Source: Phaeosaccion multiseriatum (lineage: Eukaryota > Protista > Ochrophyta, other classes). Taken from it: DNA of 64,000 nucleotides. Location of the stretch: NCBI GenBank assembly GCA_965112735.1, contig OZ218951.1, positions 1 through 64,000 of the forward strand. The letters are read 5' to 3'. Within the stretch, counting starts at the first letter, position 1. The number at the start of each line of letters is the position of its first letter. Both the position numbers and the translations under genes were made by a program. Below are positions 7,301-30,500 of the stretch, in pieces. The notes beneath the pieces were generated by a model. It saw nothing but the letters and a program-made list of their open reading frames with translations. It made no database searches and had not been told where the DNA came from.

Positions 7301-9605
7301 ACGAAGTGGTTCTCCACTGGTTCTCGACTCCTGAGGCCGCAGACGAAGTGGTTCTCCACTGGTTCTCGAGTCATGAGGCCTCGAACGAAGTGGTTCTCCA
7401 CTGGTTCTCGACTCCTGAGGCCTCGGACGAAGTGGTTCTCCACTGGTTCTCGACTCCTGAGGCCTCGGACGAAGTGGTTCTCCACTGGTTCTCGAGTCCT
7501 GAGGCCGCAGACGAAGTGGTTCTCCACTGGTTCTCGAGTCCTAAGGCCTCGAACGAAGTGGTTCTCCACTGGTTCTCGAGTCCTGAGGCCTCGGACGAAG
7601 TGGTTCTCCGCTGGTTCTCGAGTCCTAAGGCCTCGGACGAAGTGGTTCTCCACTGGTTCTCGAGTCCTAAGGCCTCGGACGAAGTGGTTCTCCACTGGTT
7701 CTCGACTCCTGAGGCCTCGGACGAAGTGGTTCTCCACTGGTTCTCGAGTCCTGAGGCCTCGAACGAAGTGGTTCTCCACTGGTTCTCGACTCCTGAGGCC
7801 TCGGACGAAGTGGTTCTCAAGTGGTTCTCGAGTCCTGAGGCCTTGGACGAAGTGGTTCTCCACTGGTTCTCGAGTCCTGAGGCCTCGGACGAAGTGGTTC
7901 TCCACTGGTTCTCGAGTCCTGAGGCCTCGGACGAAGTGGTTCTCCACTGGTTCTCGACTCCTGAGGCCGCAGACGAAGTGGTTCTCCACTGGTTCTCGAG
8001 TCCTGAGGCCTCGAAGGAAGTGGTTCTCCACTGGTTCTCGACTCCTGAGGCCTCGGACGAAGTGGTTCTCCACTGGTTCTCGACTCCTGAGGCCTCGGAC
8101 GAAGTGGTTCTCCACTGGTTCTCGAGTCCTGAGGCCGCAGACGAAGTGGTTCTCCACTGGTTCTCGAGTCCTGAGGCCTCGAACGAAGTGGTTCTCCACT
8201 GGTTCTCGAGTCCTGAGGCCTCGGACGAAGTGGTTCTCCGCTGGTTCTCGAGTCCTAAGGCCTCGGACGAAGTGGTTCTCCACTGGTTCTCGAGTCCTGA
8301 AGCCTCGGACGAAGTGGTTCTCCACTGGTTCACGAGTCCTAAGGCCTCGGACGAAGTGGTTCTCCACTGGTTCTCGAGTCCTGAGGCCTCGGACGAAGTG
8401 GTTCTCAAGTGGTTCTCGAGTCCTGAGGCCTCGGACGAAGTGGTTCTCCACTGGTTCTCGACTCCTGAGGCCGCAGACGAAGTGGTTCTCCACTGGTTCT
8501 CGAGTCCTGAGGCCTCGAAGGAAGTGGTTCTCCACTGGTTCTCGACTCCTGAGGCCTCGGACGAAGTGGTTCTCCACTGGTTCTCGAGTCCTGAGGGGAG
8601 TCCTAAGGCCTCGGACGAAGTGGTTCTCCACTGGTTCTCGAGTCCTGAGGCCTCGGACGAAGTGGTTCTCCACTGGTTCTCGAGTCCTGAGGGGAGTCCT
8701 AAGGCCTCGGACGAAGTGGTTCTCCACTGGTTCTCGAGTCCTGAGGCCTCGGACGAAGTGGTTCTCCACTGGTTCTCGAGTCCTGAGGCCTCGGACGAAG
8801 TGGTTCTCCACTGGTTCTCGAGTCCTGAGGCCTCGGACGAAGTGGTTCTCCGCTGGTTCTCGAGTCCTAAGGCCTCGGACGAAGTGGTTCTCAAGTGGTT
8901 CTCGAGTCCTGAGGCCTTGGACGATGTGGTTCTCCACTGGTTCTCGAGTCCTGAGGCCGCGGACGAAGTGGTTCTCAAGTGGTTCTCGAGTCCTCAGGCC
9001 TCGGACGAAGTGGTTCTCCACTGGTTCTCGAGTCCTGAGGCCTCGGACGAAGTGGTTCTCCACTGGTTCTCGAGTCCTGAGGCCTCGGACGAAGTGGTTC
9101 TCCACTGGTTCTCGAGTCCTGAAGCCTCGGACGAAGTGGTTCTCCACTGGTTCTCGAGTCCTAAGGCCTCGGACGAAGTGGTTCTCCACTGGTTCTCGAG
9201 TCCTGAGGCCTCGGACGAAGTGGTTCTCCACTGGTTCTCGAGTCCTGAGGCCTCGGACGAAGTGGTTCTCAAGTGGTTCTCGAGTCCTGAGGCCTCGGAC
9301 GAAGTGGTTCTCCACTGGTTCTCGACTCCTGAGGCCGCAGACGAAGTGGTTCTCCACTGGTTCTCGAGTCCTGAGGCCTCGAAGGAAGTGGTTCTCCACT
9401 GGTTCTCGACTCCTGAGGCCTCGGACGAAGTGGTTCTCCACTGGTTCTCGACTCCTGAGGCCTCGGACGAAGTGGTTCTCCACTGGTTCTCGAGTCCTGA
9501 GGCCGCAGACGAAGTGGTTCTCCACTGGTTCTCGAGTCCTGAGGCCTCGAACATAGTGGTTCTCCACTGGTTCTCGAGTCCTGAGGCCTCGGACGAAGTG
9601 GTTCT
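4348..9605. repeat. 42-bp subtelomeric satellite, distal block (~125 copies)
   Basis: Consensus GTCCTGAGGCCTCGGACGAAGTGGTTCTCCACTGGTTCTCGA with point variants; explains the 14-aa repeat ORFs. Confidence 0.97.
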
Positions 9606-9911
9606 TGTAAGAAGGCTTCCTTTTGCTAGGCTGGCAGCTATCCACTGAATATTCACGGGGGTAGCTGCCAGCCTAGCAAAAGGAAGCCTTCTTACATGCC
9701 TGTCAGTTAAGGTCGATCCTTCCCCCCCCTCCGAAAACTCCTCCGAAAACCTTGGGGGGCTAACTACCTAGGATTTCTCCCACACCGAGCCCGTTACCTC
9801 GAATTTCAGTGTCATGCCCAACTTTCGCCCTCGGAAATTTTCTCACCATCCTCAAAATCGAACCCCGTCTGGGCATGTAAGAAGGCTTCCTTTTGCTTAG
9901 GGTTAGGGTTA
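9606..9911. mobile_element. 306-bp non-coding fold-back insert with TTAGGG tail, flanked by GTTCT direct repeats
   Basis: 35-bp inverted arms at 9606-9640 and 9662-9696; 26-bp inverted pair at 9675-9700 and 9872-9897; TTAGGGTTAGGGTTA at 9897-9911; GTTCT at 9601-9605 and 9912-9916. Structure is seen directly; mobility is inferred. Confidence 0.55.
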
Positions 9912-12900
9912 GTTCTCCACTGGTTCTCGAGTCCTGAGGCCTCGGACGAAGTGGTTCTCCACTGGTTCTCGAGTCCTGAGGCCTCGGACGAAGTGGTTCT
10001 CCACTGGTTCTCGAGTCCTGAGGCCTCGGACGAAGTGGTTCTCAAGTGGTTCTCGAGTCCTGAGGCCTCGGACGAAGTGGTTCTCCACTGGTTCTCGACT
10101 CCTAAGGCCTCGGACGAAGTGGTTCTCCACTGGTTCTCGAGTCCTGAGGCCTCGGACGAAGTGGTTCTCAAGTGGTTCTCGAGTCCTGAGGCCTCGGACG
10201 AAGTGGTTCTCAAGTTGTTCTCGAGTCCTGAGGCCTCGGACGAAGTGGTTCTCCACTGGTTCTCGAGTCCTGAGGCCTCGGACGAAGTGGTTCTCCACTG
10301 GTTCTCGAGTCCTAAGGCCTCGGACGAAGTGGTTCTCCACTGGTTCTCGAGTCCTGAGGCCTCGGACGAAGTGGTTCTCCACTGGTTCTCGAGTCCTCAG
10401 GCCTCGGACGAAGTGGTTCTCCACTGGTTCTCGAGTCCTGAGGCCTCGGACGAAGTGGTTCTCCACTGGTTCTCGAGTCCTAAGGCCTCGGACGAACTGG
10501 TTCTCCACTGGTTCCCGAGTCCTGAGGCCTCGGACGAAGTGGTTCTCCACTGGTTCTCGAGTCCTGAGGCCTCGGACGAAGTGGTTCTCCACTGGTTCTC
10601 GAGTCCTGAGGCCTCGGACGAAGTGGTTCTCCACTGGTTCTCGAGTCCTGAGGCCTCGGACGAAGTGGTTCTCCACTGGTTCTCGAGTCCTGAGGCCTCG
10701 GACGAAGTGGTTCTCAAGTGGTTCTCGAGTCCTGAGGCCTCGGACGAAGTGGTTCTCCACTGGTTCTCGACTCCTGAGGCCGCAGACGAAGTGGTTCTCC
10801 ACTGGTTCTCGAGTCCTGAGGCCTCGAAGGAAGTGGTTCTCCACTGGTTCTCGACTCCTGAGGCCTCGGACGAAGTGGTTCTCCACTGGTTCTCGACTCC
10901 TGAGGCCGCGGACGAAGTGGTTCTCAAGTGGTTCTCGAGTCCTGAGGCCTCGGACGAAGTGGTTCTCCACTGGTTCTCGAGTCCTGAGGCCTCGGACGAA
11001 GTGGTTCTCCACTGGTTCTCGAGTCCTAAGGCCTCGGACGAAGTGGTTCTCCACTGGTTCTCGAGTCCTGAGGCCTCGGACGAAGTGGTTCTCCACTGGT
11101 TCTCGAGTCCTCAGGCCTCGGACGAAGTGGTTCTCCACTGGTTCTCGAGTCCTGAGGCCTCGGACGAAGTGGTTCTCCACTGGTTCTCGAGTCCTAAGGC
11201 CTCGGACGAACTGGTTCTCCACTGGTTCCCGAGTCCTGAGGCCTCGGACGAAGTGGTTCTCCACTGGTTCTCGAGTCCTGAGGCCTCGGACGAAGTGGTT
11301 CTCCACTGGTTCTCGAGTCCTGAGGCCTCGGACGAAGTGGTTCTCCACTGGTTCTCGAGTCCTGAGGCCTCGGACGAAGTGGTTCTCCACTGGTTCTCGA
11401 GTCCTGAGGCCTCGGACGAAGTGGTTCTCCACTGGTTCTCGAGTCCTGAGGCCTCGGACGAAGTGGTTCTCCGCTGGTTCTCGAGTCCTAAGGCCTCGGA
11501 CGCAGTGGTTCTCCACTGGTTCTCGAGTCCTAAGGCCTCGGACGAAGTGGTTCTCCACTGGTTCTCGAGTCCTGAGGCCTCGGACGAAGTGGTTCTCCAC
11601 TGGTTCTCGACTCCTGAGGCCTCGGACGAAGTGGTTCTCAAGTGGTTCTCGAGTCCTGAGGCCTTGGACGAAGTGGTTCTCCACTGGTTCTCGAGTCCTG
11701 AGGCCTCGGACGAAGTGGTTCTCCACTGGTTCTCGAGTCCTGAGGCCTCGGACGAAGTGGTTCTCCACTGGTTCTCGAGTCCTGAGGCCTCGGACGAAGT
11801 GGTTCTCCACTGGTTCTCGAGTCCTGAGGCCTCGGACGAAGTGGTTCTCAAGTGGTTCTCGAGTCCTGAGGCCTCGGACGAAGTGGTTCCCCACTGGTTC
11901 TCGAGTCCTGAGGCCGCGGACGAAGTGGTTCTCCACTGGTTCTCGAGTCCTGAGGCCTCGGACGAAGTGGTTCTCAAGTGGTTCTCGAGTCCTGAGGCCT
12001 CGGACGAAGTGGTTCTCAAGTGGTTCTCGAGTCCTGAGGCCTCGGACGAAGTGGTTCCCCACTGGTTCTCGAGTCCTAAGGCCTCGGACGAATTGCTTCT
12101 CAAGTGGTTCTCGAGTCCTCAGGCCTCGGACGAAGTGGTTCTCCACTGGTTCTCGAGTCCTGAGGCCTCGGACGAAGTGGTTCTCCACTGGTTCTCGAGT
12201 CCTGAGGCCTCGGACGAAGTGGTTCTCCACTGGTTCTCGAGTCCTGAGGGGAGTCCTAAGGCCTCGGACGAAGTGGTTCTCCACTGGTTCTCGAGTCCTG
12301 AGGCCTCGGACGAAGTGGTTCTCCACTGGTTCTCGAGTCCTGAGGGGAGTCCTAAGGCCTCGGACGAAGTGGTTCTCCACTGGTTCTCGAGTCCTGAGGC
12401 CTCGGACGAAGTGGTTCTCCACTGGTTCTCGAGTCCTGAGGCCTCGGACGAAGTGGTTCTCCACTGGTTCTCGAGTCCTGAGGCCTCGGACGAAGTGGTT
12501 CTCCACTGGTTCTCGAGTCCTGAGGCCTCGGACGAAGTGGTTCTCCACTGGTTCTCGAGTCCTAAGGCCTCGGACGCAGTGGTTCTCCACTGGTTCTCGA
12601 GTCCTAAGGCCTCGGACGAAGTGGTTCTCCACTGGTTCTCGAGTCCTGAGGCCTCGGACGAAGTGGTTCTCCACTGGTTCTCGACTCCTGAGGCCTCGGA
12701 CGAAGTGGTTCTCAAGTGGTTCTCGAGTCCTGAGGCCTTGGACGAAGTGGTTCTCCACTGGTTCTCGAGTCCTGAGGCCTCAGAAGAAGTGGTTCTCAAG
12801 TGGTTCTCGAGTCCTGAGGCCGCGGACGAAGTGGTTCTCAACTGGTTCTCGAGTCCTGAGGCCTCGGACGAAGTGGTTCTCCACTGGTTCTCGACTCCTG

Positions 12901-15900
12901 AGGCCTCGGACGAAGTGGTTCTCCACTGGTTCTCGAGTCCTGAGGCCTCGGACGAAGTGGTTCTCCACTGGTTCTCGAGTCCTGAGGCCTCGGACGAAGT
13001 GGTTCTCCACTGGTTCTCGAGTCCTGAGGCCTCGGACGAAGTGGTTCTCCGCTGGTTCTCGAGTCCTAAGGCCTCGGACGCAGTGGTTCTCCACTGGTTC
13101 TCGAGTCCTAAGGCCTCGGACGAAGTGGTTCTCCACTGGTTCTCGAGTCCTGAGGCCTCGGACGAAGTGGTTCTCCACTGGTTCTCGAGTCCTGAGGCCT
13201 CGGACGAAGTGGTTCTCCACTGGTTCTCGAGTCCTGAGGCCTCGGACGAAGTGGTTCTCCACTGGTTCTCGAGTCCTGAGGCCTCGGACGAAGTGGTTCT
13301 CCACTGGTTCTCGAGTCCTGAGGCCTCGGACGAAGTGGTTCTCAAGTGGTTCTCGAGTCCTGAGGCCTCGGACGAAGTGGTTCTCCACTGGTTCTCGACT
13401 CCTGAGGCCTCGGACGAAGTGGTTCTCCACTGGTTCTCGACTCCTGAGGCCTCGAAGGAAGTGGTTCTCCACTGGTTCTCGACTCCTGAGGCCTCGGACG
13501 AAGTGGTTCTCCACTGGTTCTCGACTCCTGAGGCCGCGGACGAAGTGGTTCTCAAGTGGTTCTCGAGTCCTGAGGCCTAGGACGAAGTGGTTCTCCACTG
13601 GTTCTCGAGTCCTGAGGCCTCGGACGAAGTGGTTCTCCACTGGTTCTCGAGTCCTAAGGCCTCGGACGAAGTGGTTCTCCACTGGTTCTCGAGTCCTGAG
13701 GCCTCGGACGAAGTGGTTCTCCACTGGTTCTCGAGTCCTCAGGCCTCGGACGAAGTGGTTCTCCACTGGTTCTCGAGTCCTGAGGCCTCGGACGAAGTGG
13801 TTCTCCACTGGTTCTCGAGTCCTAAGGCCTCGGACGAACTGGTTCTCCACTGGTTCCCGAGTCCTGAGGCCTCGGACGAAGTGGTTCTCCACTGGTTCTC
13901 GAGTCCTGAGGCCTCGGACGAAGTGGTTCTCCACTGGTTCTCGAGTCCTGAGGCCTCGGACGAAGTGGTTCTCCACTGGTTCTCGAGTCCTGAGGCCTCG
14001 GACGAAGTGGTTCTCCACTGGTTCTCGAGTCCTGAGGCCTCGGACGAAGTGGTTCTCCACTGGTTCTCGAGTCCTGAGGCCTCGGACGAAGTGGTTCTCC
14101 GCTGGTTCTCGAGTCCTAAGGCCTCGGACGCAGTGGTTCTCCACTGGTTCTCGAGTCCTAAGGCCTCGGACGAAGTGGTTCTCCACTGGTTCTCGAGTCC
14201 TGAGGCCTCGGACGAAGTGGTTCTCCACTGGTTCTCGACTCCTGAGGCCGCAGACGAAGTGGTTCTCCACTGGTTCTCGAGTCCTGAGGCCTCGAAGGAA
14301 GTGGTTCTCCACTGGTTCTCGACTCCTGAGGCCTCGGACGAAGTGGTTCTCCACTGGTTCTCGAGTCCTGAGGCCTCGGACGAAGTGGTTCTCCACTGGT
14401 TCTCGAGTCCTGAGGCCTCGGACGAAGTGGTTCTCCACTGGTTCTCGAGTCCTGAGGCCTCGGACGAAGTGGTTCTCAAGTGGTTCTCGAGTCCTGAGGC
14501 CTCGGACGAAGTGGTTCCCCACTGGTTCTCGAGTCCTGAGGCCGCGGACGAAGTGGTTCTCCACTGGTTCTCGAGTCCTGAGGCCTCGGACGAAGTGGTT
14601 CTCAAGTGGTTCTCGAGTCCTGAGGCCTCGGACGAAGTGGTTCTCAAGTGGTTCTCGAGTCCTGAGGCCTCGGACGAAGTGGTTCCCCACTGGTTCTCGA
14701 GTCCTAAGGCCTCGGACGAATTGCTTCTCAAGTGGTTCTCGAGTCCTCAGGCCTCGGACGAAGTGGTTCTCCACTGGTTCTCGAGTCCTGAGGCCTCGGA
14801 CGAAGTGGTTCTCCACTGGTTCTCGAGTCCTGAGGCCTCGGACGAAGTGGTTCTCCACTGGTTCTCGAGTCCTGAGGGGAGTCCTAAGGCCTCGGACGAA
14901 GTGGTTCTCCACTGGTTCTCGAGTCCTGAGGCCTCGGACGAAGTGGTTCTCCACTGGTTCTCGAGTCCTGAGGGGAGTCCTAAGGCCTCGGACGAAGTGG
15001 TTCTCCACTGGTTCTCGAGTCCTGAGGCCTCGGACGAAGTGGTTCTCCACTGGTTCTCGAGTCCTGAGGCCTCGGACGAAGTGGTTCTCCACTGGTTCTC
15101 GAGTCCTGAGGCCTCGGACGAAGTGGTTCTCCACTGGTTCTCGAGTCCTGAGGCCTCGGACGAAGTGGTTCTCCACTGGTTCTCGAGTCCTAAGGCCTCG
15201 GACGCAGTGGTTCTCCACTGGTTCTCGAGTCCTAAGGCCTCGGACGAAGTGGTTCTCCACTGGTTCTCGAGTCCTGAGGCCTCGGACGAAGTGGTTCTCC
15301 ACTGGTTCTCGACTCCTGAGGCCTCGGACGAAGTGGTTCTCAAGTGGTTCTCGAGTCCTGAGGCCTTGGACGAAGTGGTTCTCCACTGGTTCTCGAGTCC
15401 TGAGGCCTCAGAAGAAGTGGTTCTCAAGTGGTTCTCGAGTCCTGAGGCCGCGGACGAAGTGGTTCTCAACTGGTTCTCGAGTCCTGAGGCCTCGGACGAA
15501 GTGGTTCCCCACTGGTTCTCGAGTCCTGAGGCCGCGGACGAAGTGGTTCTCCACTGGTTCTCGAGTCCTGAGGCCTCGGACGAAGTGGTTCTCCACTGGT
15601 TCTCGAGTCCTGAGGCCTCGGACGAAGTGGTTCTCAAGTGGTTCTCGAGTCCTGAGGCCTCGGAAGAAGTGGTTCTCCACTGGTTCTCGAGTCCTGAGGC
15701 CTCAGAAGAAGTGGTTCTCAAGTGGTTCTCGAGTCCTGAGGCCGCGGACGAAGTGGTTCTCAAGTGGTTCTCGAGTCCTGAGGCCTCGGAAGAAGTGGTT
15801 CTCAAGTGGTTCTCGAGTCCTGAGGCCTCGGACGAAGTGGTTCTCCACTGGTTCTCGAGTCCTGAGGCCTCGGACGAAGTGGTTCTCAAGTGGTTCTCGA

Positions 15901-17133
15901 GTCCTGAGGCCTCGGACGAAGTGGTTCTCCACTGGTTCTCGAGTCCTGAGGCCTCGGACGAAGTGGTTCTCCACTGGTTCTCGAGTCCTGAGGCCTCGGA
16001 CGAAGTGGTTCTCCACTGGTTCTCGAGTCCTGAGGCCTCGGACGAAGTGGTTCTCCACTGGTTCTCGAGTCCTGAGGCTGCGGACGAAGTGGTTCTCCAC
16101 TGGTTCTCGAGTCCTGAGGCCTCGGACGAAGTGGTTCTCAAGTGGTTCTCGAGTCCTGAGGCCTTGGACGAAGTGGTTCTCCACTGGTTCTCGAGTCCTA
16201 AGGCCGCGGACGAAGTGGTTCTCCACTGGTTCTCGAGTCCTGAGGCCTCGGACGAAGTGGTTCTCAAGTGGTTCTCGAGTCATGAGGCCTCGGACGAAGT
16301 GGTTCTCCACTGGTTCTCGAGTCCTGAGGCCGCGGACGAAGTGGTTCTCCACTGGTTCTCGAGTCCTGAGGCCTCGGACGAAGTGGTTCTCAAGTGGTTC
16401 TCGAGTCCTGAGGCCTCGGACGAAGTGGTTCTCAAGTGGTTCTCGAGTCCTGAGGCCTCGGACAAAGTGGTTCTCCACTGGTTCTCGAGTCCTAAGACCT
16501 CGGACGAAGTGGTTCTCCACTGGTTCTCGAGTCCTGAGGCCGCGGACGAAGTGGTTCTCCACTGGTTCTCGAGTCCTGAGGCCTCGGACGAAGTGGTTCT
16601 CGACTGGGTCTCGAGTCCTGAGGGCTTGGACGAAGTGGTTCTCCACTGGTTTTCGAGTCCTGAGGCCTCGGACGAAGTGGTTCTCCACTGGTTCTCGAGT
16701 CCTGAGGCCGCGGACGAAGTGGTTCTCCACTGGTTCTGGAGTCCTGAGGCCTCGGACGAAGTGGTTCTCCACTGGTTCTCGAGTCCTAAGGCCGCGGACG
16801 AAGTGGTTCTCCACTGGTTCTCGAGTCCTGAGGCCTCGGACGAAGTGGTTCTCAACTGGTCCTCGAGTCATGAGGCCTCGGACGAAGTGGTTCTCCACTG
16901 GTTCTCGAGTCCTGAGGCCGCGGACGAAGTGGTTCTCCACTGGTTCTCGAGTCCTGAGGCCTCGGACGAAGTGGTTCTCAAGTGGTTCTCGAGTCCTGAG
17001 GCCTCGGACGAAGTGGTTCTCAAGTGGTTCTCGAGTCCTGAGGCCTCGGACAAAGTGGTTCTCCACTGGTTCTCGAGTCCTGAGGCCGCGGACGAAGTGG
17101 TTCTCCACTGGTTCTCGAGTCCTGAGGCCTCGG
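9912..17133. repeat. 42-bp subtelomeric satellite, proximal block (~170 copies)
   Basis: Same 42-bp unit and orientation as the distal block; ends at ...cctgaggcctcgg near 17133. Confidence 0.97.
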
Positions 17134-17325: not shown

Positions 17326-18595
17326 TCATTGATGAAGGGCCTGGTGAGCTCTCATCATGGTCAAGACGAGAGTCGACCCGTTCCAGCTTGAGTTGCTGTG
17401 CCTGGCTTCTTGCGCATTCAGAATCTGCTGGAAGCACCTCTCAGCCCGCGGACTCGGCAGGTAGACGTCGTGTACCGGTGGCATTTCGTCAAAGAAGAGC
17501 CGCAGGAAGTAGCTCAACGCGGGAAGCAAATTCCTCGAGGCGAGAAAGTCTTCTGTAGAGAGGATTCGAGGTCGTGTGCCACCGGCACTCTCGACTGCCA
17601 GTTGGAGCGTCTCTGGTGCAATGGTAAAAGCCTCACACGCAGCGTTGTACACCGTCGGTGCTGTTGGTGTATCGCTGCTGCGCCTGCCAACTCCCGCACT
17701 TGCCACTCCCGGCTGTGTACTGAGCCGGACGATGACCTGCGACACCAAGTCAACCGGAGTGGCGTTCATAGCGTGCGTCACAGCCTCCCCGTGCTTGCTG
17801 GCCTGCACAATCATGGATGTAAACACGTCGCCGCGCATGGGGGCAAATCCTGTGGAGGTGTGCCCTGCGACGAGTGGGACTCTGTACACATTGACGGCCA
17901 GGCCCTCCTGCGCTGCCTGCGTGACGAGCTTCTCTGCTACCCACTGCGGGGTTTTGGGGGGAAACGAGACAAACAGCGAGAAGGTGTGAGCATAGCGTGA
18001 TAAGAGGGTAGACGGACGAGCAAGAGTAAGGCAGCGCTGCCTTTGATCGTACCTTGCTTTGGTAGTACCCGATCTGCTTGCCGAGCGCGCACCCCGAGGC
18101 AGGGGCTGCAGTCATGTCTCCCAAGGGCGCGTCGGCGGGCATCCTCCCGTCCTCGTTGACCATGTCCGGAGTAAGAACAGCTGTTGTGGAAACCATGTGC
18201 AGCGTCTTTAACGAGTTGGTAGCAGCGAAGCTGAGCACATGAAGAGTCCCCAGCACGTTCGGCGCGAACAGCTGTGCATAGCTCTTGGAGTAGCTCAGGA
18301 GAGCGGCCGAGTGGTAAACGAGAGTCACTGTGCTGGCCAGGCGCTGATACACTTCTTTGGAAAGCCCGAGAGTTGGAGAAGTGACGTTCCCCTCGTAGAC
18401 CATCAGCCTCGCTCTTTCCGACTCGCGTAGAGTAAGCTTGGCTTCTTTCAATCCGAACAGAGTGCGCTGCATGGCGTCCTTATCGTCCGAAGCGCGAACG
18501 ATGCAGTGCACAGTCGACTGAGGGTGAGCCTGCAGCAAGTCCACTAGCAGATGCCGCCCTACGAATCCTGTCGCGCCTGTGAGCAGTATGGACTC
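17326..18595 (-). other. Terminal thioester reductase (NAD_binding_4 / SDR) domain
   Basis: ILLTGATGFVG, VHCIVRA, VYHSAA, NVLGT, MVST, catalytic GYYQSKWVAE across the last intron, VYRVP. Confidence 0.92.
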
Positions 18596-21500
18596 TGCTA
18601 CTGGTGTGCTCAACCTTACACCTCCTGCTGATGCCTGCCGCGCCATTTCCCGTATCGTGGCGGCGATATCACTCGGCAGATACGCGTCCACCCAAAGATC
18701 TGGAGCTTCTCTCTTACCCACAAGATCCGCCTCGAACTCTCCGTCAGCGCCGTTGCGACTGTAGGCACTGCGCGACATACGCACCGCGGGCACCCCTTCG
18801 AGCAGCACATCATCCGTCTGCTGGAGCCCGGGACTAATGAGAGTTCCCGGAGACACGCCGCAATCACGGGGAAGAGACGCCGAGGCAGCAACAATGGATC
18901 CTGCCCCTACCGTCACCCTTTGGCCGACCCGAACCTTTTCAAATAGAATACAGCAGGTGGTGCTTTCCTCAACGTGAGCTGGAAGCGCCCTCCCTTCTTC
19001 CACACTTCCAGACACGCTGTAATCAAAGGGTAGAGACGCCGAGTCGCCTGCCCCCACTGTCGCCTTTCGTCCAAGGAGGACCTTCTCAAGCAGACTACAG
19101 CAATTGGTGCTTTCGGCACTGCCAGCTGAAAGCCCCCTCCCTCCATCCACATGCACGACTCGCCGGGCGTCGACCTCGCAGTCCCTATCCACAACGCTTC
19201 CTGCCCCCAAGTGCACCAAATCGAAGGTGGACAGGCCATCCGTTGCAAGCACCACCGCATTTTTGCCCACTTCAGCTCCCATGGCTCGTAACCACAAGGA
19301 GTGCGCTGCAGTGCCAGCGAGGCCGTTGACACCACTCTGTCTGGCTACCTGCGTGAAGCGGGTGCTGAACAAGTCTCTGTGGAACACCACGCCCCCGACG
19401 GCCGCGTAGCAACCTGCGCGAGCTCGGCCAACGACGCCCCACTTGAGCACCACAGCCCACACAATCATAGCCATGTTGAGTGACAAGAGAATCACAGGCG
19501 ACATGACCAGAGCCAGCCACCTACCCACCGCAGTCACAAGCCACTGGGCCAACAGGGTGCTCGCGTACACACTGGTGAATTGAAACAGAAGAATGGCAAC
19601 AGGGGCCACGATGGAGTACAACACGGTTCCCGCACCAGCCCCCCGCGCGAGTCCCCCACCCGCCCGAGGCTCCTGCTGCTGCTCATGCCGCTTGTGGAGC
19701 TTCACTCTTACCACTAGGTGGCCGCTGCGAAGAGTTCTGTGTCGCACCTTCGGATCGTAGGACGTCGATGACGACGCACACGTCAATGGGCCAACCACAG
19801 AGGTGTCGCAAAGCTCAGACCCCGGACACAGACAGGAGCCTGGTGCCGTCACCGCGCACGCTCCAATCCTGATTGTCCCTGTATATCCTTGCGCCCGGGT
19901 GGCGAAGCTCCCCGACGCCACAGAGTGAGGCCCCAGATCTAGCAAAGCAGGGTCCAGCACAGGGGAAGGAGCGCTCATTTTGGCAGTCCAGGCGACGCGA
20001 GCGCCCAGAGAACGAAGCCAGAGGACCATGCCCGGCCCTGCTGAGTGCAGAACCACGTACCGGGGGTACACCAGTCGCATCATCACGTCGACAGCGTGGA
20101 GCTCTTGCCTTGTGACGCTGCGGCCACTACTGCTGACGGCAGCAAGGGCTCCCAGGCATCGTTTCAGAGCGACGCTCATGACGGTCATACAGATGCCCGC
20201 AACTGAATAGGACAAGGCCAGAATCAGCATAGGCTTCGCCAGATACTGCTCCGTCGTCAGCTCCTTCAGCGGCGCGAGAGTGTCCACAAAACCAAGGGCG
20301 ATGGGAAGCAGCGGCACCAGCGCCAGATCGAAGGTGCCGACACATGCAGCCACGAGGTAGCCCACGTCAAGGGAGCGATAGTCCGGCACGTAGCGTCCAA
20401 GCTGAGGTACGTACGTGAAAAGGCCCCACGCTTTACTCATCTCCCCCCAGACAAAGTACGCGGGTATACTCGCGGCCGCCATGCAAACTGCGGCCAGCGC
20501 GAAGCCAACCACAGTCATCATGACGTCTTTCACGGTCGTAGCGGCAGGGTCATTCACACTGGGCCACAGGGAGCTGCTCCCCATTCTATCAGCATTGTCG
20601 TCGCACTGCTTGGCCGGAGAGCCCCCCCACTCTGTGCAAGGGGAAAGGAGCCCACACCGCCCGCTGACCACCGTGGACGGCCGCAAGCGCACCAATTCGC
20701 CCATGGTTGTGCCTCCAAACACCTGAGACGATGCCCCCAACACGCAATCTGCGCCAACGGTGATTTGCCGGAGAAGGAGATGCCGGTCCTCTATCACCGC
20801 AGGCCGAACCCGACAAAACTCCTCCACAGTGGACTGCCGCCCCAAGTGCACCAAGTCGAACTCCGATACCGACACCGAATGCAGGCGACACCCATGCCCA
20901 ATCTTTGCTCCGAGTGCGCGAAGCCACCATGTCCACACCACACTCCCATGCAGCGGCAGTCGCTGCAACGCAAAGTCCGTCACGCGATCCACAAAGAGCC
21001 AGCGGAAGTAGTACCCGCTATTGATGGGATAAGACCCCATCCGGTACCTGCCGATCACCACCCACTTGGTCAGCGTCACCACTGCCATCAGCAGAATAGC
21101 CCACGAGAGGAAAGCGAGAGGTACACAGGCCAGCGCAATCCATCTGCCCCACTTGTCTAGGACAATCGAGTCAAGGACGATGACAGCGGGCAGCGCAGAC
21201 GCGGCGACCAGCAGCGAGCTGTAAACCATCGCCACGATGCCCATGCAGAAGCTGACAATGTCGGAGGAGGACGAGCCAATGTAGTCAGCATCCTTGCCGT
21301 ACAGATCACGGTCACCATCTTCTCTCTCGTCAGCATCCCTGGCGTCCAGAGCACGGTAGCCCTCTCTCCTCTCATCCTCCCGCACAGCAGCGGCTTCGCT
21401 GGTGTCTGCTTTGGCCACCACGTCCACACCTCCATCGTCTTTTAAACGAACGAAAAGCCCCAGTATATGCCGCGCGATATCTGCCGGTGTCGGGTGTTCG

Positions 21501-24500
21501 ATCAAAATCGAAGGCGGTAGACTACAGCCGACCCACGCGGAGAGTCGGTTGACAATCTCCACCAAGGCCAACGAGTCCACACCGGCGTCCATCAGGAGGG
21601 TGGAATCATGAATCAGACCACCTTCGTCTCCAATGCAATGCTCCACAACCCGCTTCACCTTGCTCACGACCATTGCTTGACGCGCCACCGGTGGCAGGTT
21701 CAACAACTCCTCATGTAGCTCCGAATTTCCTTCTCCTGCTTTCAAATCTCCCTTTGCATAGCCCAAAAGCCCTTCGAGCATGGGAACACGCCCACCCCTC
21801 GTGGCCTTCCCATACTTGGCCCAGTCCATCCCAGGCAGGATGGACACATCGCCTAAAGACGCTGAAGAAGCTGACGACATCGCAGCAGCATCTAAGGCAG
21901 CCATACCCAGCTCAGCTGACACCGTGCCCACGCCCGCAAGCTCAAGCTGCTTTTGGACGGCACTGTCGATGTACCAAGGAAATGATCGGCGAGTCGAATA
22001 AAGCTCTAGATGCTCCGGCCCCGCTACTCTGTCCAGGGCTGCTCCAAACGACTCCTCGGAGCTCTTCCCGCGGGTGAGGGAAGATATCCACGACAGCCCC
22101 TCGCGACGCTCGCACTTGGCTCCCATGCTGCTCAGCACAGGGTTGGGGCCCACCTCAACGATGCTCAGGTCAGGCCCCCTCCCGTCTCCCATCCAGTGCT
22201 CCACCAGCGTGTGGATGCCTTCTGCGAACAGCACTGGCGACAGCATGTGTTGCACCCAATACGTCGCCTGCGTCACCTCCTCCGCTCTCACCACCTCACC
22301 CGTCACGTTGGACACCAGGGGAATGCGTGGGGCGCTCAATGACATCTGCTTCAGAACCTCCTCCAGCGCACGTACAGCGGGCTCCATCAGAGGAGAGTGG
22401 AAGGCGTGCGACACCTCCAGGGCCTTGCAGCCCACCCTATCTGCCGTGAGCTTCTCCACCACCTTGTCCACAGCGCTGCGAGCTCCAGAGATCACGCTCG
22501 CGCTCGGTCCATTCGACGACGCCAGCACCACCTCCCCTGCCACCCCCGCAGCGTCGATGCTTGCCAAAGTCGCCTCCTTGCCTGCCCTCACTGCGAACAT
22601 CACTCCTTTGCCCTCGGGGCAGGCCTGCATGGCGGCTCCTCTCTTGGCGGACAGCATCAGCCCGTCCTCCAGCGACATGACGCCGGCCACGCACGCCGCC
22701 ACTACCTCGCCCAGGCTGTGGCCCATCACCATGGACGGCTCCACGCCCTCCGACTTCCACAGCTCACACAGGGCGTACTCCAGCACAAACAGGCATGGCT
22801 GGCAGTAGCATGTCTCCTTCAGCAGCGCTTGTGCAGTCTCCTCCTCCTCTCCCCCGTCCTCAGTGGCGGCAGGGTACATGAGCTCCACCACAGACTTGTC
22901 CAGCCAAGCCCGCTCCATGAGCAGCGTACTGCACCGCTGCACGCACTCGCGGAACACGCCCTCCTTCTCGTACAGCTCCCTGCCCATGCCCACGTACTGC
23001 GAGCCCTGTCCAGTGAACAAGAACGTCACCGGCGATCTCTTCTTGCTTTGCTGCACATCAAGCTGCGGCAAGACCTCACCCCTCTCAACCAACGTTGGTC
23101 CGAAGCTGCTGAGCACTACATGGGCGTTGGCACCACCAGCACCGAAGGAACTGACTGCAGCGATACGTCGCTGCCCGTCCCTGGCACTCAGTGGCACCAT
23201 GGCAGACGGCAAAGTCACCGGAAAGCCATCCAAGCGCAGCTCCGGATTGAGCATCTTCATGTGGAGATTGGGGGGAGCAGATCCGTGCTGAAGGACCAGC
23301 AGAGCTTTGATGAGGCCAGCGATTCCGGACGCACCCTCTAGATGTCCGATATTGGTCTTCACCGCCCCAACCACTAGGGGCCGAGCTTCCTCGCGGCCGT
23401 GGCCATACACGGCTCTCAAAGCACTCATCTCGATGGGGTCGCCGAGAGACGTCCCGGTGCCGTGTGCCTCCACGTAATCAACCTCCAGACCGTTCAAGCC
23501 GGCCTCCGCCAGTGCCTGCTCCATCAGACGCTGCTGAGCAGTAGGGCTCGGGGCAGTGTAGCGCAAACTTCTCCCGTTGTGGTTCGCAGAGCAGCCATTG
23601 ACGACAGCAAGGATGTGGTCCCCATTGGCCTGTGCATCGTCCAGTCGCTTCAGCACCACGGCGCCGCAGCCCTCACCTCGAACATATCCGTTGGCCGCAG
23701 CGTCGAACGTCTTGCAGCGCCTGAAAATGAGGAATTGTGCGTTCGCAACAGTGAAGAACAGATAAGAGGTAGTCTATCAGCAACAGAGGCCTTTCAGACA
23801 GCTTGGGCGTTTTGATCTTGCTCTCATACCGGCCCCCAAGAACAAGCTCCCACCCACACAAACGAGACACGCACTTACCAGTCAAGACTCAGGAAACCAC
23901 CGTCGGCGAGGGTCTCGAACGTTTGTGTACCCAGCAGCAAGTTGACGCCTCCCACCACGGCGATGTCACACTTACCCAGCCGCAAGCTGCTGCAGGCCCC
24001 TTCCAGTGCCACCAAAGACGACGAGCAAGCCGTGTCGACACTTACGCTCGGCCCTCCGAGGCCCAGCACGTAAGACATCCGATTTGCTGGACTCGCATTG
24101 GAGATGCCCATGACGGAGTACACACCTTTGCTCGCATCGTCTACCACTGAGCCCCACTCGCTGCCGGACATACCCACGAACACACCGGTGTTGCTGCCAT
24201 GTAGTGTATCCTTGCGGTAGCCCGCCCTGTGCAGAGCCTCGTACCCCACCTCCAGCATGACGCGCTGATGAGGGTCCATGGCACCCGCCTCGGCCGCCGA
24301 GATGCCGAAGAATGTGTTGTCAAAAGCCTCCACCCCATCAATAAAGCCCCCTTGCCACTGCTTCTGACCCTCATCGGCCCAGCGACCAAGGGGGCTGGCT
24401 CCAATACAGTCTGTCCCTGCACAGAGCATATCCCAGAAGTCCTCCGGGTTCTTCACCCCTCCAGGGAAGCGACAGGCGACACCGACGACTGCCAGTGGCG

Positions 24501-27500
24501 CCCTTGACTCAGTGCGGTGCGCTTCAGCAGCGATCGCCGCAGAGCGACTGCCAGAGGGTTCCTCTATCTCTCCAAGCACCTCTGCTTCGATCCACACTGC
24601 CAGCGCCGCTACCGTGGGATATGCGAAGAGCACATCAGTGGTCACTACAACCCCGAAGCGAGCCTGTAGCTGGCCGCGCAGCTCCACTGTTGACAAAGAG
24701 TCAAGACCTGCTTCCATCAAAGGCGTGTTCGCGTCCAGCTCTTCGACACCCTCCCCAAGGAGGTCCTTGGCCATATCAAGCACCGCCAATCGCACTGATT
24801 GCTGTCGGTCGCCAGGGGGCAGTCTCAAGAGCGCCTCGCGCACTTCATTGTTGAGTTTGGTGTTGCTGGACGCACCTGCTGCTGTTGAGACAAGCCCTGA
24901 CAGCAGGGGCGATCTACGGGATGCCCCCAAGCTGCCTGCAAACCTGCCCCAGTCCATGCCAGGCAGGACAGCCACATCACCCACGGATGCTGACGACATC
25001 GCAGCCGCATCTAAGGCAGCCATGCCCAGCTCAGCTGACACCGTGCCCACACCCGCGAGCTCCAACTGCTTTTGAACGATATCGAGTTCAGCGGCCATAC
25101 CCACGGCAGCCCACGGCCCCCACTGCAATGACGTCCCTGCGAGCCCGAGGTGTCGCCTGTGCCGCATCAGCCCATCCACAGCCGCATTCGCCGCAGCGTA
25201 GTTGGCCTGTCCAGCGTTCCCCAGTACTCCGGCCATGGATGTGAAGCAAAAGAAAAAGTCAAGGCCAGAAGTGCGCCCCTCCTCCTTCGCCCAAGCCAAC
25301 GAGAGCTCATGTAAGTTCACCGCCCCCTGCACCTTGGGTCGGAAGACGTTCGTCACGCTCTCCGCCGTCTGCTCTCCCATCAGCATATCATCCAGCACCC
25401 CGGCAGCATGCACCACACCGCGTACAGGGGGGAGCAAAGGCAGGACGCACCCCAGGCAAGTCCGAAGTGCCTCAGTATCAGCAACATCACAAGTAGGAGT
25501 ATGGATCAGCTCCACCTTGTTCCGAAGCTGCTGCCACTGTTCTGTCATGCTCTCGGCGACCTTCCCACTCCTCGACAGCAGCACCAAGTGACGAGCGCCC
25601 CTCGACGCGAGGTGCTGGGCCGTCACGAGGCCGAGAGCTCCCAGACCGCCGCTGATGACGTACGTGCCATCGGACACCACTGGCACACCATACGAGGGGT
25701 TGGTCAGCACCACCTTGCCGATGTGCTTCGCTTGGCTCATAAGTGCCATGGCCTTCTGAGTATCCTCCCTCATGTCAAAGGGTATGGTCCGTAAGGGCTT
25801 CACATGGCCAGACATGCAGTCATCAGCCAGATGCTGCAGCTCGTCGCTTATCCAGCCCGGCTCACCCGCGGAGAAGTCAGACTCAATCATGTTATCCAGT
25901 GCCAGCAGGTCGTACCTCACATCGGGCCGGGCGGTGCGCATCTGCTCGTGACTCCACACGCCTCGCTTGCCAAGCTCGACGAATATACCACCCTCATGTA
26001 GCATGTCCAATGAGAAGGGAATGTAATTCTCGCTCAGAGAGTTGAGCACCACATCGACCTTCATCTCACCCATGGACTGCTTGAACGCCTCTGCGTCTCT
26101 TGAAGACGCAATGTGCTCCACTCCCAAGCTCCGGAGGAAGTCATGCTTCACAGCAGCACCGGCAGTGACGTACACCTCTGCGCCGACCCGCTGAGCATAC
26201 TGTACGGCAGCAAGGCCCACACCGCCGGATGCGGCGTGAATCAGAACCTTCTCTCCAGCCTTGAGGCCCTCAAGGGCCTTCATCACGGTGAGGAACACGG
26301 TGGGAAGTGCAGCGGCCTGCTCGAAGCTCAGTACGGCCGGCATCACGGCCAGACACACATCACTCGTCGTCGTATGACTGCGCAAACACCCTCCGTCCGC
26401 AAAGCCAAACACAGCGTCGCCGACACGGAAGCGCGAGCTCCCTCCCACACTGATCACCTCGCCGGCAAACTCGAAGCAGGGATTGCCAGGGTCGCCAGGG
26501 TACATGTCCAGCACATTCAGCACGTCTCGGAAGTTCAGCCCAACGGCCCTCACCGCCACCTCTACGGAGCTACCAGCTGCTGGGTCGAGGGACTGATGCT
26601 TACCAACGCTCGTATCGTCACGCAGGGCGAAAGCGTTCGCAATGCTGCCTCTTGCCTTCAAGTCAAGCGCGAAGGGAAGCCGCAGGGGCTGATGTACAAG
26701 CTGAGGCGTCCAGCACTGCCCATCGCGTACCCGCAAATCTTCTGAGGTGGGAGTGAAGGCCAAGCCCAAGGCAAGCTCGCTGTCTGAGGGCTTCTTGTCG
26801 CTCAGGTCCACCACACCAACCTGCATGGAAGGGTGCTCCATCCTCGCAGTCCTCACCAAACCTGTCACCCAGCTGTCACGCCAGTCCTTGCCGCTTTGGA
26901 CGCCTCTCGTCAAAATCGTCAGCGGCACACTCGACGCAGTGCACAGGCTCCTGAGAAGAGCCATCAGGGCGTAGGCCGCTCGTGCTTGGTGCCCCGCTTT
27001 TAAGTCTTGATCGTCATACCCAGAGATGAGAACGTACAAGACACGAGTCCACTCGTCCTCTCCAAGAAGAAGAGTACCATCATCCCAGGAGGCGTCCATC
27101 CCCCCATACTGAGTGTGTACGTGCACGTTCTCCGGAACACAGCGCCGCACTGCAGCAATGATTGAAATCTCTTCCTCCCTCTCGTCCTGTGGAATAACCA
27201 CCAGCCACTTCTCTGGCACCGCCGCATCGGCAGGGTCAGCATCACTACCAAGGGCCTCCTCCTGTGTAGACGGTTCAGCAACCTGCCACTCCAATGCGTA
27301 CATTGCACGGCGAACGGGGCTGACGCGCACAAAGCCCCTCGCCCGCTGCACGCGAAAGCCCCGCATCTCCACTAGCACCTCTTTGCTGTCGAAGTCTGCA
27401 ATCACCACGTCGAACTTTGCGCTGTCCGCCTCTGACTGAACCTCACTCAGCTTCGTGTGCACCCACACGTTCTTTCCTGTTATGGAGGCGGAAACGACCA

Positions 27501-30500
27501 CCTCGTCAAAGCCAGCAGGTAGGAATGGAGAGCCCCCCCCTTCCTTGAGCAGCTTCCTTGGCAACGCTTGCATGATGGTATGGGTAGCATTGTCCAGCAC
27601 CGCGGGGTGCAGAGCAAAGCCCTTCATCTCCCACGGCTCGCACAGCTCCTCATCCATGGCACAAACGACCGACAGAACCTCTCCGTCCCCGCCGTACATG
27701 TGGCGGGTCCGCTGAAAGCGGGGGCCGTAATGGAAGCCGGCGTCTGCGAAAGACTTATAGAGCCCACTCGATACGTCCTGCTCGCCAACTCTAGCTCGAA
27801 TGGATTCCACGTGCAGCGAAGCAGGCGCCGTGCTACGCTCCAAGACAGACACGTGCTTCATTCTTGCCGTGGTGCCCTTGTCGCCCGTGGCACCCCCGAA
27901 AAACTGCATGCTTCCATCTGGCGCGTGAAGGGCACTCATCCCGGCACCGACCATAGTATGGCGGCTTTGGGCCTGGTCCGTGCCGGTGTGCTGAAAACCC
28001 TCAATCTCCAGTGGAACCACAAACCTGGCTCCTTGCAGGACTACCTGCTGCTCCACTCCGAGCTGGCTTCCTCCTAGAGCAGCGATGACGCCCACTTCAA
28101 TGTACGTCACCCCCGGAATGATTACCACATTGTTGACGGCATGGTCCTTGAGAAGATTCTTGAGATGAGGGGAGAAGGGGCTGGCGAGCCGCATTCCGCC
28201 TCTCTCTTGGACCACCTCACCACTTGGCATAAACGCCAGCGGAGGCTTGTACCAAGGAAATGATCGGCGAGTCGGATAAAGCTCTAGATGCTCCGGCCCC
28301 GCTACTGTGTCCAGGGCTGCTCCAAACGACTCCTCGGAGCTCTTCCCGCGCGTGAGGGAAGAGATCCACGCCAGCCCCTCACAACGCTCGCACTTGGCTC
28401 CCATGCTGCTCAGCACAGGGTTGGGGCCCACCTCAACGATGCTCAGGTCAGGCCCCCTCCCGTCTCCCATCCAGTGCTCCACCAGCGTGTGGATGCCTTC
28501 TGCGAACAGCACTGGCGACAGCATGTGTTGCACCCAATACGTCGCCTGCGTCACCTCCTCCGCTCTCACCACCTCACCCGTCACGTTGGACACCAGGGGA
28601 ATGCGTGGGGCGCTCAATGACACCTGCCTCAGAACCTCCTCCAGCGCACGTACAGCGGGCTCCATCAGAGGAGAGTGGAAGGCGTGCGACACCTCCAGGG
28701 CCTTGCAGCCCACCCCATCTGCCGTGAGCTTCTCCACGACCTTGTCCACAGCGCTGCGAGCTCCAGAGATCACGCTCGCGCTCGGTCCATTCGACGACGC
28801 CAGCACCACCTCGCCTGCCCCCCCCGCAGCGTCGATGCTTGCCAAAGTCGCCTCCTTGCCTGCCCTCACTGCGAACATCACTCCTTTGCCCTCGGGGCAG
28901 GCCTGCATGGCGGCTCCTCTCTTGGCGGACAGCATCAGCCCGTCCTCCAGCGACATGACGCCGGCCACGCACGCCGCCACTACCTCGCCCAGACTGTGGC
29001 CCATCACCATGGACGGCTCCACGCCCTCCGACTTCCACAGCTCACACAGGGCGTACTCCAGCACAAACAGGCATGGCTGGCAGTAGCGTGTCTCCTTCAG
29101 CAGCGCTTGTGCAGTCTCCTCCTCCTCCTCCTCCTCCCCGTCCTCAGCGACCACAGGGTACATGAGCTCCACTACAGACTTGTCCAGCCAAGCCCGCTCC
29201 ATGAGCAGCGTACTGCACCGCTGCACGCACTCGCGGAACACGCCCTCCTTCTCGTACAGCTCCCTGCCCATGCCCACGTACTGCGAGCCCTGTCCGGTGA
29301 ACAAGAACGCCACCGGCGATCTCTTCTTGCTTTGCTGCCCATCCAGCTGCAGCAAGGCCTCGCTCCTCTCAACCACCGTTGGTCCGAAGCTGCTGAGTAC
29401 AGCGTGTGCATTGGCACCACCAGCACCGAAGGAACTGACTGCAGCGATACGTCGCTCCCCGCTCTCGTAACTCAGAGAGACCATGGCGGAAGGTAGAGTC
29501 ACTGAAAAGCCTTCCAGTGGCAGCTCCGGATTGAGCTTGCTCATGTTGAGATTCGGCGGGGCAGCTCCATGCTGAAGCACCAACACAGCCTTGATGACGC
29601 CAGCTATTCCGGAAGCCCCCTCTAGGTGCCCGATATTGGTCTTCACCGCCCCAACCACCAGAGGCCTCGCTTCCTCCCGACCCTTGCCGTACACGGCCCT
29701 CAAAGCGCTCATCTCGATGGGGTCACCGAGAGAGGTGCCTGTGCCGTGCACCTCAACGTAGTGCATGTCTAAACCGTCAAAGGCGGCCTCCGCAAGAGCC
29801 TCATTAATCACGTCCTGCTGGGCCAGTGGGCTCGGGGCGGTGTATCGCACGCCCTTTCCGTTGTGGTTCGCGGAGGATCCATTCACAAGTGCGAGAATGA
29901 CGTCGCCATCAGTCTCTGCATCATCCAGTCGCTTCAGCACCACAGCGCCGCAGCCCTCGCCCCGAACGTAACCGTTGGCCGATACATCGAAGGTTTTACA
30001 GCGCCTTGATTACAGGAGGGCACAAGCAAAAATGAAAACAATGGTTGCGGGCCGCGGGGGCTATGAGGGTAATGTAGTTTGCTCCCAGGAAGATCCAAAA
30101 ACTACAACTTTGCGCGTCCTCATCGTGGATATGTGAGTCTCTCATCAAGACACGACACACACTTACCAGTCAGGTGAAAGAAATCCCCCAGCTGCGAGAC
30201 CTTCGAAGCCTGCGGTGCCTAGAAGCAGGTTTACGCCGCCTACCACGGCGAGGTTACTCTTACCCAGCCTCAAACTGTTACAGGCAGCGTCCAGTGCCAC
30301 CAGTGATGACGAGCAGGCAGTGTCTACACTGAAGCTAACGCCCCTCAGCCCCAGCACGTAAGACAGCCGGTTGGCAGGACTTGCGTTTGACGTGGCCATC
30401 ACGGAGTATGCGCTTCGCTCCTCATCCGCACCCACTGAGCCCCACTCGCTGCCGGACACACCCACGAACACACCGGTGTTGCTGCCATGTAGTGTATCCT

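Follow-up and report, generated by a model that had tools for sequence, protein, structure and literature searches.

The terminal part of a modular polyketide synthase (PKS) gene was analysed in a 64,000-nucleotide stretch of the Phaeosaccion multiseriatum genome (contig OZ218951.1, positions 1 to 64,000; assembly GCA_965112735.1), referred to here as the window. The gene encodes a FAAL-primed (fatty-acid-primed) modular PKS that ends in a carrier domain, a Pls-like membrane domain and a thioester reductase. Chains made by PKSs and nonribosomal peptide synthetases (NRPSs) are released by thioesterases, reductases, condensation-type domains or, in polyamino-acid synthetases, by a Pls membrane domain, and two of these known devices are fused in tandem here. 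Comparison across the Pls family pointed to a testable rule: a histidine in the third unit is kept by Pls-like domains without a reductase and has been lost wherever a reductase follows. From sequence and modelled structure, we give about an even chance (roughly 0.5) to a reading in which chain release falls to the reductase, the Pls-like domain serving as a re-purposed membrane platform or conduit with no Pls-type acyl transfer.

Residue numbers of the protein are counted from window position 23659 on the minus strand. The minus-strand frame 23659-17750 contained 1969 codons and zero stops, and the same frame continued open 5' of 23659 as far as the exon start near 23720, taking in the ketosynthase (KS) motif CKTFD..GYVRGEG. 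Within this single stop-free frame, the C-terminal part of the KS (residues 1-134), an acyltransferase (AT) domain (residues 212-488; both from Pfam/NCBIfam) and the acyl carrier protein ACP5 were followed by a membrane region of ~870 residues and then by the reductase. Neither a stop codon nor an intron lies between ACP5 and the Rossmann motif TGATGFVG (residues 1693-1700, window 18583-18560), confirming the proposal of an initial annotation that the fusion is independent of splicing. The interval which that annotation had assigned to the two tandem devices also agreed with the features found, as 17326 is the last base of the stop codon and 21265 lies just inside the first transmembrane (TM) helix, placed at 21271-21149. 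The phosphopantetheine serine of ACP5 is S696, in the motif DSL, and this serine column was kept in 95% of relatives. The features from the carrier domain to the stop codon are as follows.

21455..21706, minus strand: ACP5, the last carrier domain (residues ~652-735; Pfam PP-binding match at 683-732, E 6.9e-11).
21272..21454, minus strand: charged, disordered tether of ~60 residues from ACP5 to the first TM helix (from sequence; AlphaFold2 pLDDT below 50 at model residues 100-150).
20555..21271, minus strand: Pls-like unit 1, with TM1 at 797-837, TM2 at 846-868, a helical subdomain and beta-helix 1 at 937-1012 (AlphaFold2 pLDDT mostly above 90).
19658..20554, minus strand: Pls-like unit 2, with TM3 at 1038-1077, TM4 at 1141-1175, a helical subdomain and beta-helix 2 at 1227-1318 (from hydropathy, AlphaFold2 and hmmalign).
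18776..19657, minus strand: Pls-like unit 3, with TM5 at 1335-1378, TM6 at 1380-1410, a helical subdomain and beta-helix 3 at 1482-1628 (from alignments and AlphaFold2).
18857..19141, minus strand: private tandem duplication of 49 codons within beta-helix 3 (copies 19141-19004 and 18994-18857, ~75% DNA identity in a pairwise alignment).
18590..18775, minus strand: linker from beta-helix 3 to the reductase, ~60 residues with one helix at 1663-1678 and no hydrophobic segment (from hydropathy and AlphaFold2).
18053..18589, minus strand: exon-1 part of the thioester reductase (PF07993, E 4.4e-38, profile positions 1-146; TIGR01746, E 2.6e-40).
17944..18052, minus strand: phase-0 GT-AG intron of 109 nt within the reductase (from sequence and one contig of run X5).
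17326..17943, minus strand: last exon of the thioester reductase, 205 codons plus TGA at 17328-17326 (PF07993 positions 182-258, E 1.9e-7).

The reductase profile matches were obtained exon by exon, with each exon as a separate query. The NAD_binding_4/thioester reductase match in exon 1 covered residues 1691-1848, and the catalytic Y-x-x-x-K was present as YYQSK (Y1865 and K1869). The intron donor gt at 18052 directly follows this motif, whose aag codon ends at 18053, and the acceptor ag occupies 17945-17944. The second exon (coding part 17943-17329) opens with WVAEKLV, the canonical continuation of the Y-x-x-S-K-W-x-A-E motif. One public contig from run X5 joined 18053 to 17943, skipping exactly 109 bases whose ends read CT..AC on the plus strand; a spliced, or intron-less, form therefore exists in nature. 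Joined in this way, the domain is a complete Rossmann-type thioester reductase with both TGxxGxxG and Y-x-x-x-K, apparently redox-competent judging from its motifs, and the Pls-like domain lies in frame between it and the last ACP, as the initial annotation had it.

The best solved relatives of the reductase were MxaA (4u7w, 6e-24) and the Mycobacterium tuberculosis Nrp R domain (4dqv), then carboxylic acid reductases, with matches to solved terminal R domains falling between 6e-24 and 1e-23. In MxaA and Nrp, the R domain reduces the chain twice in succession and so releases it as an alcohol. The TGxxGxxG and YxxxK motifs are common to the reductase described here, MxaA of the myxalamid pathway, Nrp, carboxylic acid reductases and the R domain of Cryptosporidium CpFAS1, and by this likeness NAD(P)H-dependent release of an aldehyde or alcohol would be expected. 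Known R domains are joined to their carrier by a short linker, whereas ~950 residues of membrane protein intervene here. Reductive release from long-chain acyl thioesters has been described (PMC2995488).

The last module (KS-AT-ACP5) contains no ketoreductase (KR), dehydratase (DH), enoylreductase (ER) or adenylation (A) domain and, since reducing domains are missing, ACP5 should carry a long 3-oxoacyl chain. A chain of this kind is also the substrate type of R* cyclases, and the reductase might then lack redox activity and be an R* domain of the Dieckmann type, or might instead tailor the free product, the chain leaving by some other route. We consider this very improbable, because the Y-x-x-x-K and the glycine-rich nucleotide motif are intact, the best matches are the redox-active MxaA, Nrp and carboxylic acid reductases, and no amino-acid-adding module precedes the reductase; tetramate-forming R* domains require such a module.

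Kyte-Doolittle hydropathy of the membrane region showed seven hydrophobic segments in a 2+3+2 pattern. An AlphaFold2 model of ACP5 plus the membrane region, built from an alignment with 71 relatives (alignment A1), had a mean pLDDT of 76.5 and a pTM of 0.79, with most of the core above 90. The modelled fold consists of three repeats, each with a long TM helix pair, two or three short helices and a left-handed beta-helix, and the three beta-helices are packed as a single soluble pseudo-trimer on a six-helix bundle. Hydropathy and model thus agree with the three TM-pair/hexapeptide units recognised in the initial annotation, and such tandem units are a feature of Pls and PosA. The fold also matched the published AlphaFold/RoseTTAFold model of the PosA terminal domain, in which six bent membrane helices lie beneath three packed beta-helices (PMC10522769).

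Foldseek comparison with the Protein Data Bank (PDB) returned soluble hexapeptide acyltransferases only (serine, maltose and galactoside O-acetyltransferases), and these trimeric enzymes superposed on the helical subdomain and left-handed beta-helix of each unit. In contrast to them, the protein described here has three fused, diverged copies in one membrane-embedded chain and no conserved equivalent of the catalytic histidine, which in the soluble enzymes lies at the subunit interface. Pfam Hexapep matches at 920-1000 were weak (E 1.6e-5, under the cut-off). A profile search of PDB sequences revealed carrier domains, hexapeptide transferases and gamma-carbonic-anhydrase-like complex I subunits, and no solved Pls-type structure was found in the PDB by either sequence profile or Foldseek fold search.

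The membrane topology was deduced from the same model. Unit 2 has an extra hydrophobic helix-break-helix loop (1083-1139) between TM3 and TM4, and the seventh hydrophobic segment (1099-1125, with two prolines) falls within it; the model, at low confidence here, suggests a re-entrant or peripheral element. A single TM pair separates ACP5 from beta-helix 1, and no hydrophobic segment occurs between beta-helix 3 and the reductase. Given one soluble beta-helix assembly and the TM1-TM2 pair, ACP5 and the reductase would be on the same side whatever the unit-2 loop does, and from the model and homology ACP5, the three beta-helices and the reductase are all predicted to be on one (cytosolic) membrane face. 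The initial annotation had argued that an even number of helices was needed for this arrangement; the model has that even number, and a topology placing the two domains on opposite sides was not seen. We rejected a seven-helix (odd) topology, as the extra segment is the TM3-TM4 loop and parity is set by TM1-TM2 and the single beta-helix assembly.

The relationship to the Pls/PosA family was evident in profile searches. The TIGR02353 Pls/PosA terminal domain matched residues 825-1301 with an E value of 1.8e-50, spanning profile positions 20-440 of 695, at 172.1 bits against a curated cut-off of 423.1. By this evidence, the membrane region is genuinely homologous to the terminal domain of Pls and PosA, as had been proposed in the initial annotation, without being an equivalog. 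Two word-index searches yielded 608 matches (best 5e-58, domain alone) and 345 matches (best 4.5e-60, domain within the 1969-residue open reading frame), nearly all of them ~1330-residue A-thiolation-Pls (A-T-Pls) proteins, many named 'Pls/PosA family non-ribosomal peptide synthetase', and an exhaustive HMMER search gave 1513 matches at E values up to 1e-3. No close orthologue above ~32% identity was found in the two word-index searches and the exhaustive HMMER search.

The domain described here and Pls/PosA share homology at E values of 1e-50 to 1e-60, three repeats of TM pair, helical subdomain and beta-helix, and a position directly after a carrier. They differ in that the carrier here is fed by the KS-AT of a PKS, with no amino-acid A domain in the last module, and the domain is not last in its polypeptide, the reductase following in frame. 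The near-invariant unit-2 and unit-3 motifs of Pls/PosA (AEIST, FIAD, FVGN, QTH..EDR and MKGE) are missing, and the unit-2 hydrophobic loop and the private unit-3 duplication are additional. All three units of bacterial Pls-type proteins aligned best to unit 1 of this protein, indicating that units 2 and 3 are the diverged ones here. Because of the substrate type and the motif loss, iterative amide polymerisation of a diamino acid by this domain appears unlikely. As its score lies below the curated cut-off, its feeder is not an amino-acid A-T pair, a reductase follows it and the conserved motifs are missing, the domain is best assigned to a diverged sister class of eukaryotes and not to the Pls/PosA synthetases. 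Among the canonical A-T-Pls proteins, P0234 (1890 aa) has a 4'-phosphopantetheinyl transferase (ACPS) domain fused 3' of Pls and keeps the canonical motifs, making it a self-priming variant of the polyamino-acid synthetase.

Conserved positions were compared in 379 fetched proteins, comprising all family matches and two cluster co-members, with the present protein aligned separately. A MAFFT alignment and an hmmalign to a profile of bacterial members both revealed near-invariant polar motifs in A-T-Pls proteins: AEIST, FIAD and FVGN in unit 2, and EFD, QTHLFEDR, VMK and MKGE in unit 3. All 16 key positions were present in 228 of the 379 proteins and at least 12 in 347. The remaining 32 proteins, with fewer than 12, were mostly long, divergent or truncated, and every fetched reductase-bearing protein was among them. 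The protein described here kept only the aspartate of EFD and reads DAR at the QTH position.

The unit-3 histidine was kept by nearly every relative that has no reductase, including PKS-fused ones. Eight reductase-less controls have lost most of the amino-acid-type motifs and nevertheless retain E/D...x-x-H at the same beta-helix position.

P0312: 4380-residue Stygiella incarcerata PKS ending in a Pls-like domain; no reductase, histidine kept.
P0340: FAAL fusion; no reductase, histidine kept.
P0313 and P0361: multi-module NRPS forms; no reductase, histidine kept.
P0346 and P0209: fungal-type proteins (P0209 from Mycena epipterygia); no reductase, histidine kept.
P0369 and P0338: divergent reductase-less relatives; histidine kept.

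The P0209 protein, an A-T-Pls-like form, also carries RING-type zinc-finger domains.

In the reductase-bearing class, the histidine was replaced (by L, V, R or I) in 10/10 distinct proteins inspected, as well as in the present protein, and the alignment showed no other conserved histidine anywhere in the Pls-like domain of this class. Histidine is the catalytic base of soluble hexapeptide acyltransferases. From this parallel and the conservation pattern, we infer that the unit-3 histidine is the catalytic base of the Pls family; reviews among the literature searched give no catalytic residues for Pls. By the same comparison, we infer that the reductase-bearing lineage gave up Pls-type histidine chemistry.

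For a minority of the matches the alignment formed one co-linear stretch, and in these proteins the Pls-like domain is followed by a reductase. The domain orders found (C, condensation; T, carrier; FMO, flavin monooxygenase-like; R, reductase) are as follows.

P0287 / P0378: KS-AT-FMO-DH-ACP-PlsLike-R, on a eukaryote-like metagenome contig.
P0301: C-A-T-PlsLike-R, Prorocentrum cordatum / Polarella glacialis.
P0314: C-A-T-PlsLike-R, EukProt transcriptome.
P0328: C-A-T-PlsLike-R, Symbiodinium pilosum.
P0120: T-PlsLike-R.
P0244 / P0379: PlsLike-R, with no carrier domain detected.
P0353: PlsLike-R.
P0309: A-PlsLike-R.
P0368: Cladocopium goreaui, a partial protein with carrier and Pls-like domain that ends before any reductase; reductase-bearing status unconfirmed.

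The cassette of carrier, Pls-like domain and reductase, as read from these sequences, occurs behind both PKS and NRPS modules, in a eukaryote-rich branch of the Pls family. The sources of the reductase-bearing relatives found are dinoflagellates, transcriptomes and metagenomes. The protist proteins with all three parts (P0301, P0328, P0314, P0287/P0378 and P0120) share with the present protein the cassette, the loss of the histidine motif and the branch. Identity over the carrier and Pls-like stretch was 21-26% (best 28% over the tree columns), most of these proteins follow NRPS modules, and the unit-3 duplication was present in none. The Cladocopium goreaui protein showed the same co-linear, single-stretch alignment of its Pls-like domain and the same histidine-motif loss. 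The nearest PKS with an ACP-PlsLike-R end was P0287 / P0378, which has its flavin monooxygenase-like domain between AT and DH.

Maximum-likelihood analysis of the Pls-like domain placed ten reductase-bearing rows, including the present protein, on one side of a branch with an SH-aLRT support of 98. When P0309, the fragment P0302 (no reductase detected, histidine lost) and divergent reductase-less relatives were added, the set appeared as an eight-row clade (98) and a two-row clade (100) in an unresolved neighbourhood. Branches in these trees were long and placements are approximate; P0368 was left out as partial. The reductase-bearing set may have a single origin.

Domains of this kind in protists have been touched on in earlier work. 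Multidomain PKS transcripts of Karenia brevis were reported to have C-terminal beta-helix (LbH) regions, which were not recognised as Pls-related or membrane-embedded and for which no reductase partner was described (PMC5725682), and Symbiodiniaceae genes were cited as a gene family with a 'terminal domain of unknown function' (bioRxiv 10.64898/2026.09.08.749829). In the literature searched, the Karenia beta-helix mention and the Cladocopium 'unknown function' mention were the only references to Pls-like domains in algal PKSs, and no study of the carrier-PlsLike-reductase cassette was found.

The loss of the histidine bears on whether the domain still transfers acyl groups. The initial annotation had suggested that the reductase makes an alcohol which the Pls-like domain then acylates, and this part of its interpretation was weakened, as the histidine and the surrounding acidic and basic motifs are lost and the class has no invariant histidine. 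A broader version would keep the domain as an acyltransferase or polymerase with a non-histidine base, joining the ACP5 chain to the reductase-made alcohol, to a membrane lipid or to a growing lipid polymer, so that two domains acting in sequence would give wax-ester, estolide or polyester-type products. The position directly after the carrier, as in Pls, the intact fold with high AlphaFold2 confidence, the apparent constraint on units 1 and 2 and the class-invariant unit-1 charged residues, which stand at the equivalents of the bacterial unit-3 E, D and E, all speak for it. Nevertheless, we regard it as doubtful: the histidine conserved across reductase-less branches is lost in every reductase-bearing member with no other invariant histidine, the unit-2 and unit-3 motifs are gone, unit 3 has a disruptive insertion, and class-conserved polar positions are changed here (S1172L, R1190V, N1454S and D1467N).

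The class has invariant charged residues of its own: E933, E947, R952, E957 and R1001 in unit 1 and R1200 in unit 2. Unit 1 is the best-conserved unit, and the protein described here kept every unit-1 class residue, the four changes just listed falling in units 2 and 3. The presence of class-specific invariant residues argues against a dead remnant.

The condition of this particular copy was assessed from differences between the window and public contigs, used in place of dN/dS among orthologues since no close orthologues were found; the places listed, 40 of 129 variant places, are a small sample. Unit 1 had 4 synonymous and 1 non-synonymous differences among them (plus 1 non-synonymous in the tether before unit 1), unit 2 had 9 and 5, and units 1 and 2 together had 13 synonymous to 6 non-synonymous, whereas unit 3 had 4 synonymous and 11 non-synonymous. 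The rough dN/dS among these places was near 0.3 overall and close to 1 in unit 3. The 49-codon duplication sits in a ~60-residue unit-3 insertion that is absent from all relatives (gaps in alignment A1), and AlphaFold2 pLDDT there was 30-50. Units 1 and 2 appear to be under constraint, and neutral evolution does not fit the domain as a whole, though constraint may be relaxed in unit 3 of this copy. The refuting circumstance named in the initial annotation, a degenerate and neutrally evolving domain, hence applies to unit 3 of this copy at most.

These observations bear on a further explanation, by which the Pls-like domain of this subtelomeric copy is a decaying remnant, at most a passive tether, in a gene that is perhaps one redundant paralogue of many. 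The unit-3 differences, the duplication and the low model confidence there fit this explanation, as do the replacement of several class-conserved residues and the location, with the stop codon close to a satellite array near the telomere and other contigs diverging just past it. Its chance is slim, given the open frame of 1969 codons, the intact intron and junction-spanning contig, the mostly synonymous differences in units 1 and 2, the retention of all unit-1 class-specific residues and an AlphaFold2 model that is good for the whole assembly except the insert.

Under the platform-or-conduit reading that we favour, the reductase would release the chain by using NAD(P)H to turn the long, probably 3-oxo, acyl thioester on ACP5 into an aldehyde or alcohol. 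The Pls-like domain would persist as a membrane platform, keeping the last module at the bilayer and accommodating or receiving the very hydrophobic chain, and may also move the product into the membrane or through it. The class-specific charged site (E933, E947, R952 and E957 of unit 1, R1200 of unit 2) would serve docking or binding and not histidine-based catalysis; the unit-1 site may dock the carrier arm or the reductase. The alternative offered in the initial annotation, that the domain only anchors or exports, is favoured by these results, although passive anchoring is probably not the whole role of a domain of ~870 residues in which charged residues are invariant across the class. Overall, its interpretation was partly supported, in that homology, fusion and topology held.

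Several points weigh against this reading. A domain of this size with invariant glutamates and arginines could be a transferase with a non-histidine base. As the reductase-bearing lineage is possibly of one origin, the link between histidine loss and reductase may be one evolutionary event, is counted as one, and is not independent evidence. Model confidence is low for the seventh hydrophobic segment (1099-1125). The unit-3 differences and private duplication suggest that this copy may be decaying, and the variant contigs themselves may mix alleles, strains and near-identical paralogues.

The reading can be extended to an unrecognised release-and-export machine, in which the reductase frees a very-long-chain aldehyde or alcohol at the membrane and the histidine-less Pls-like pseudo-trimer either threads the product through the six-helix bundle or attaches it to an outside acceptor by some new mechanism. 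This extension is speculative and seems improbable to us; if true, the cassette would be a source of monomers for a resistant lipid polymer outside the cell or for unusual protist long-chain diols or ketols.

The gene lies beside a chromosome end. Positions 1-4330 contained CCCTAA-type telomeric repeats mixed with, and then replaced by, a long CCTGG/GGCCT 5-bp satellite with a GC content of ~0.8. The space from the telomeric repeats to the PKS gene (4348-17133) is filled by a 42-bp minisatellite of ~302 copies (12.8 kb, 91% matches), which accounts for the long stop-free 'ORFs' on both strands there and ends ~190 bp from the PKS stop codon. At 17317, contigs of runs X2, X3 and X5 that match the last exon diverge from the window, 9 nt past the stop codon, indicating a second version of the 3' flank from an allele, a strain or a near-identical paralogue; alternatively, this chromosome end may have suffered a truncation immediately beyond the gene and been healed there.

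Upstream of the last module, two large exons each have the order [KS C-half]-AT-DH-ER-KR-ACP-[KS N-half], and further upstream are KS...ACP...KS and a FAAL-type AMP-binding/DIP2-like piece. The full line reads FAAL-ACP-KS-ACP-KS-AT-DH-ER-KR-ACP-KS-AT-DH-ER-KR-ACP-KS-AT-ACP5-PlsLike-R. Each exon of the upstream pair (23878-36216) runs from the C-half of one KS to the N-half of the next, so that every KS is split by an intron at the identical place, and the near-identical domain spacing of the two exons suggests a recent module duplication. Summed contig depth in the AT region (21831-23012) was 10-100x that of the rest of the stretch, which fits an AT sequence repeated in other modules and many paralogous PKS genes.

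New here are the histidine/reductase rule for the whole family, with a PKS that has no reductase as its control, together with the clade, the junction contig, the parity argument and the unit-3 duplication. To our knowledge, the structure and mechanism of the Pls family are still unsolved. If the rule holds, it would identify the catalytic residue of the whole Pls family. It would also define a module for reductive chain release, coupled to the membrane and spread over dinoflagellates, stramenopile-type algae and other protists. It would then bear on how such protists make and place very-long-chain lipids, with ACP-PlsLike-R as a compact construct for enzymology.

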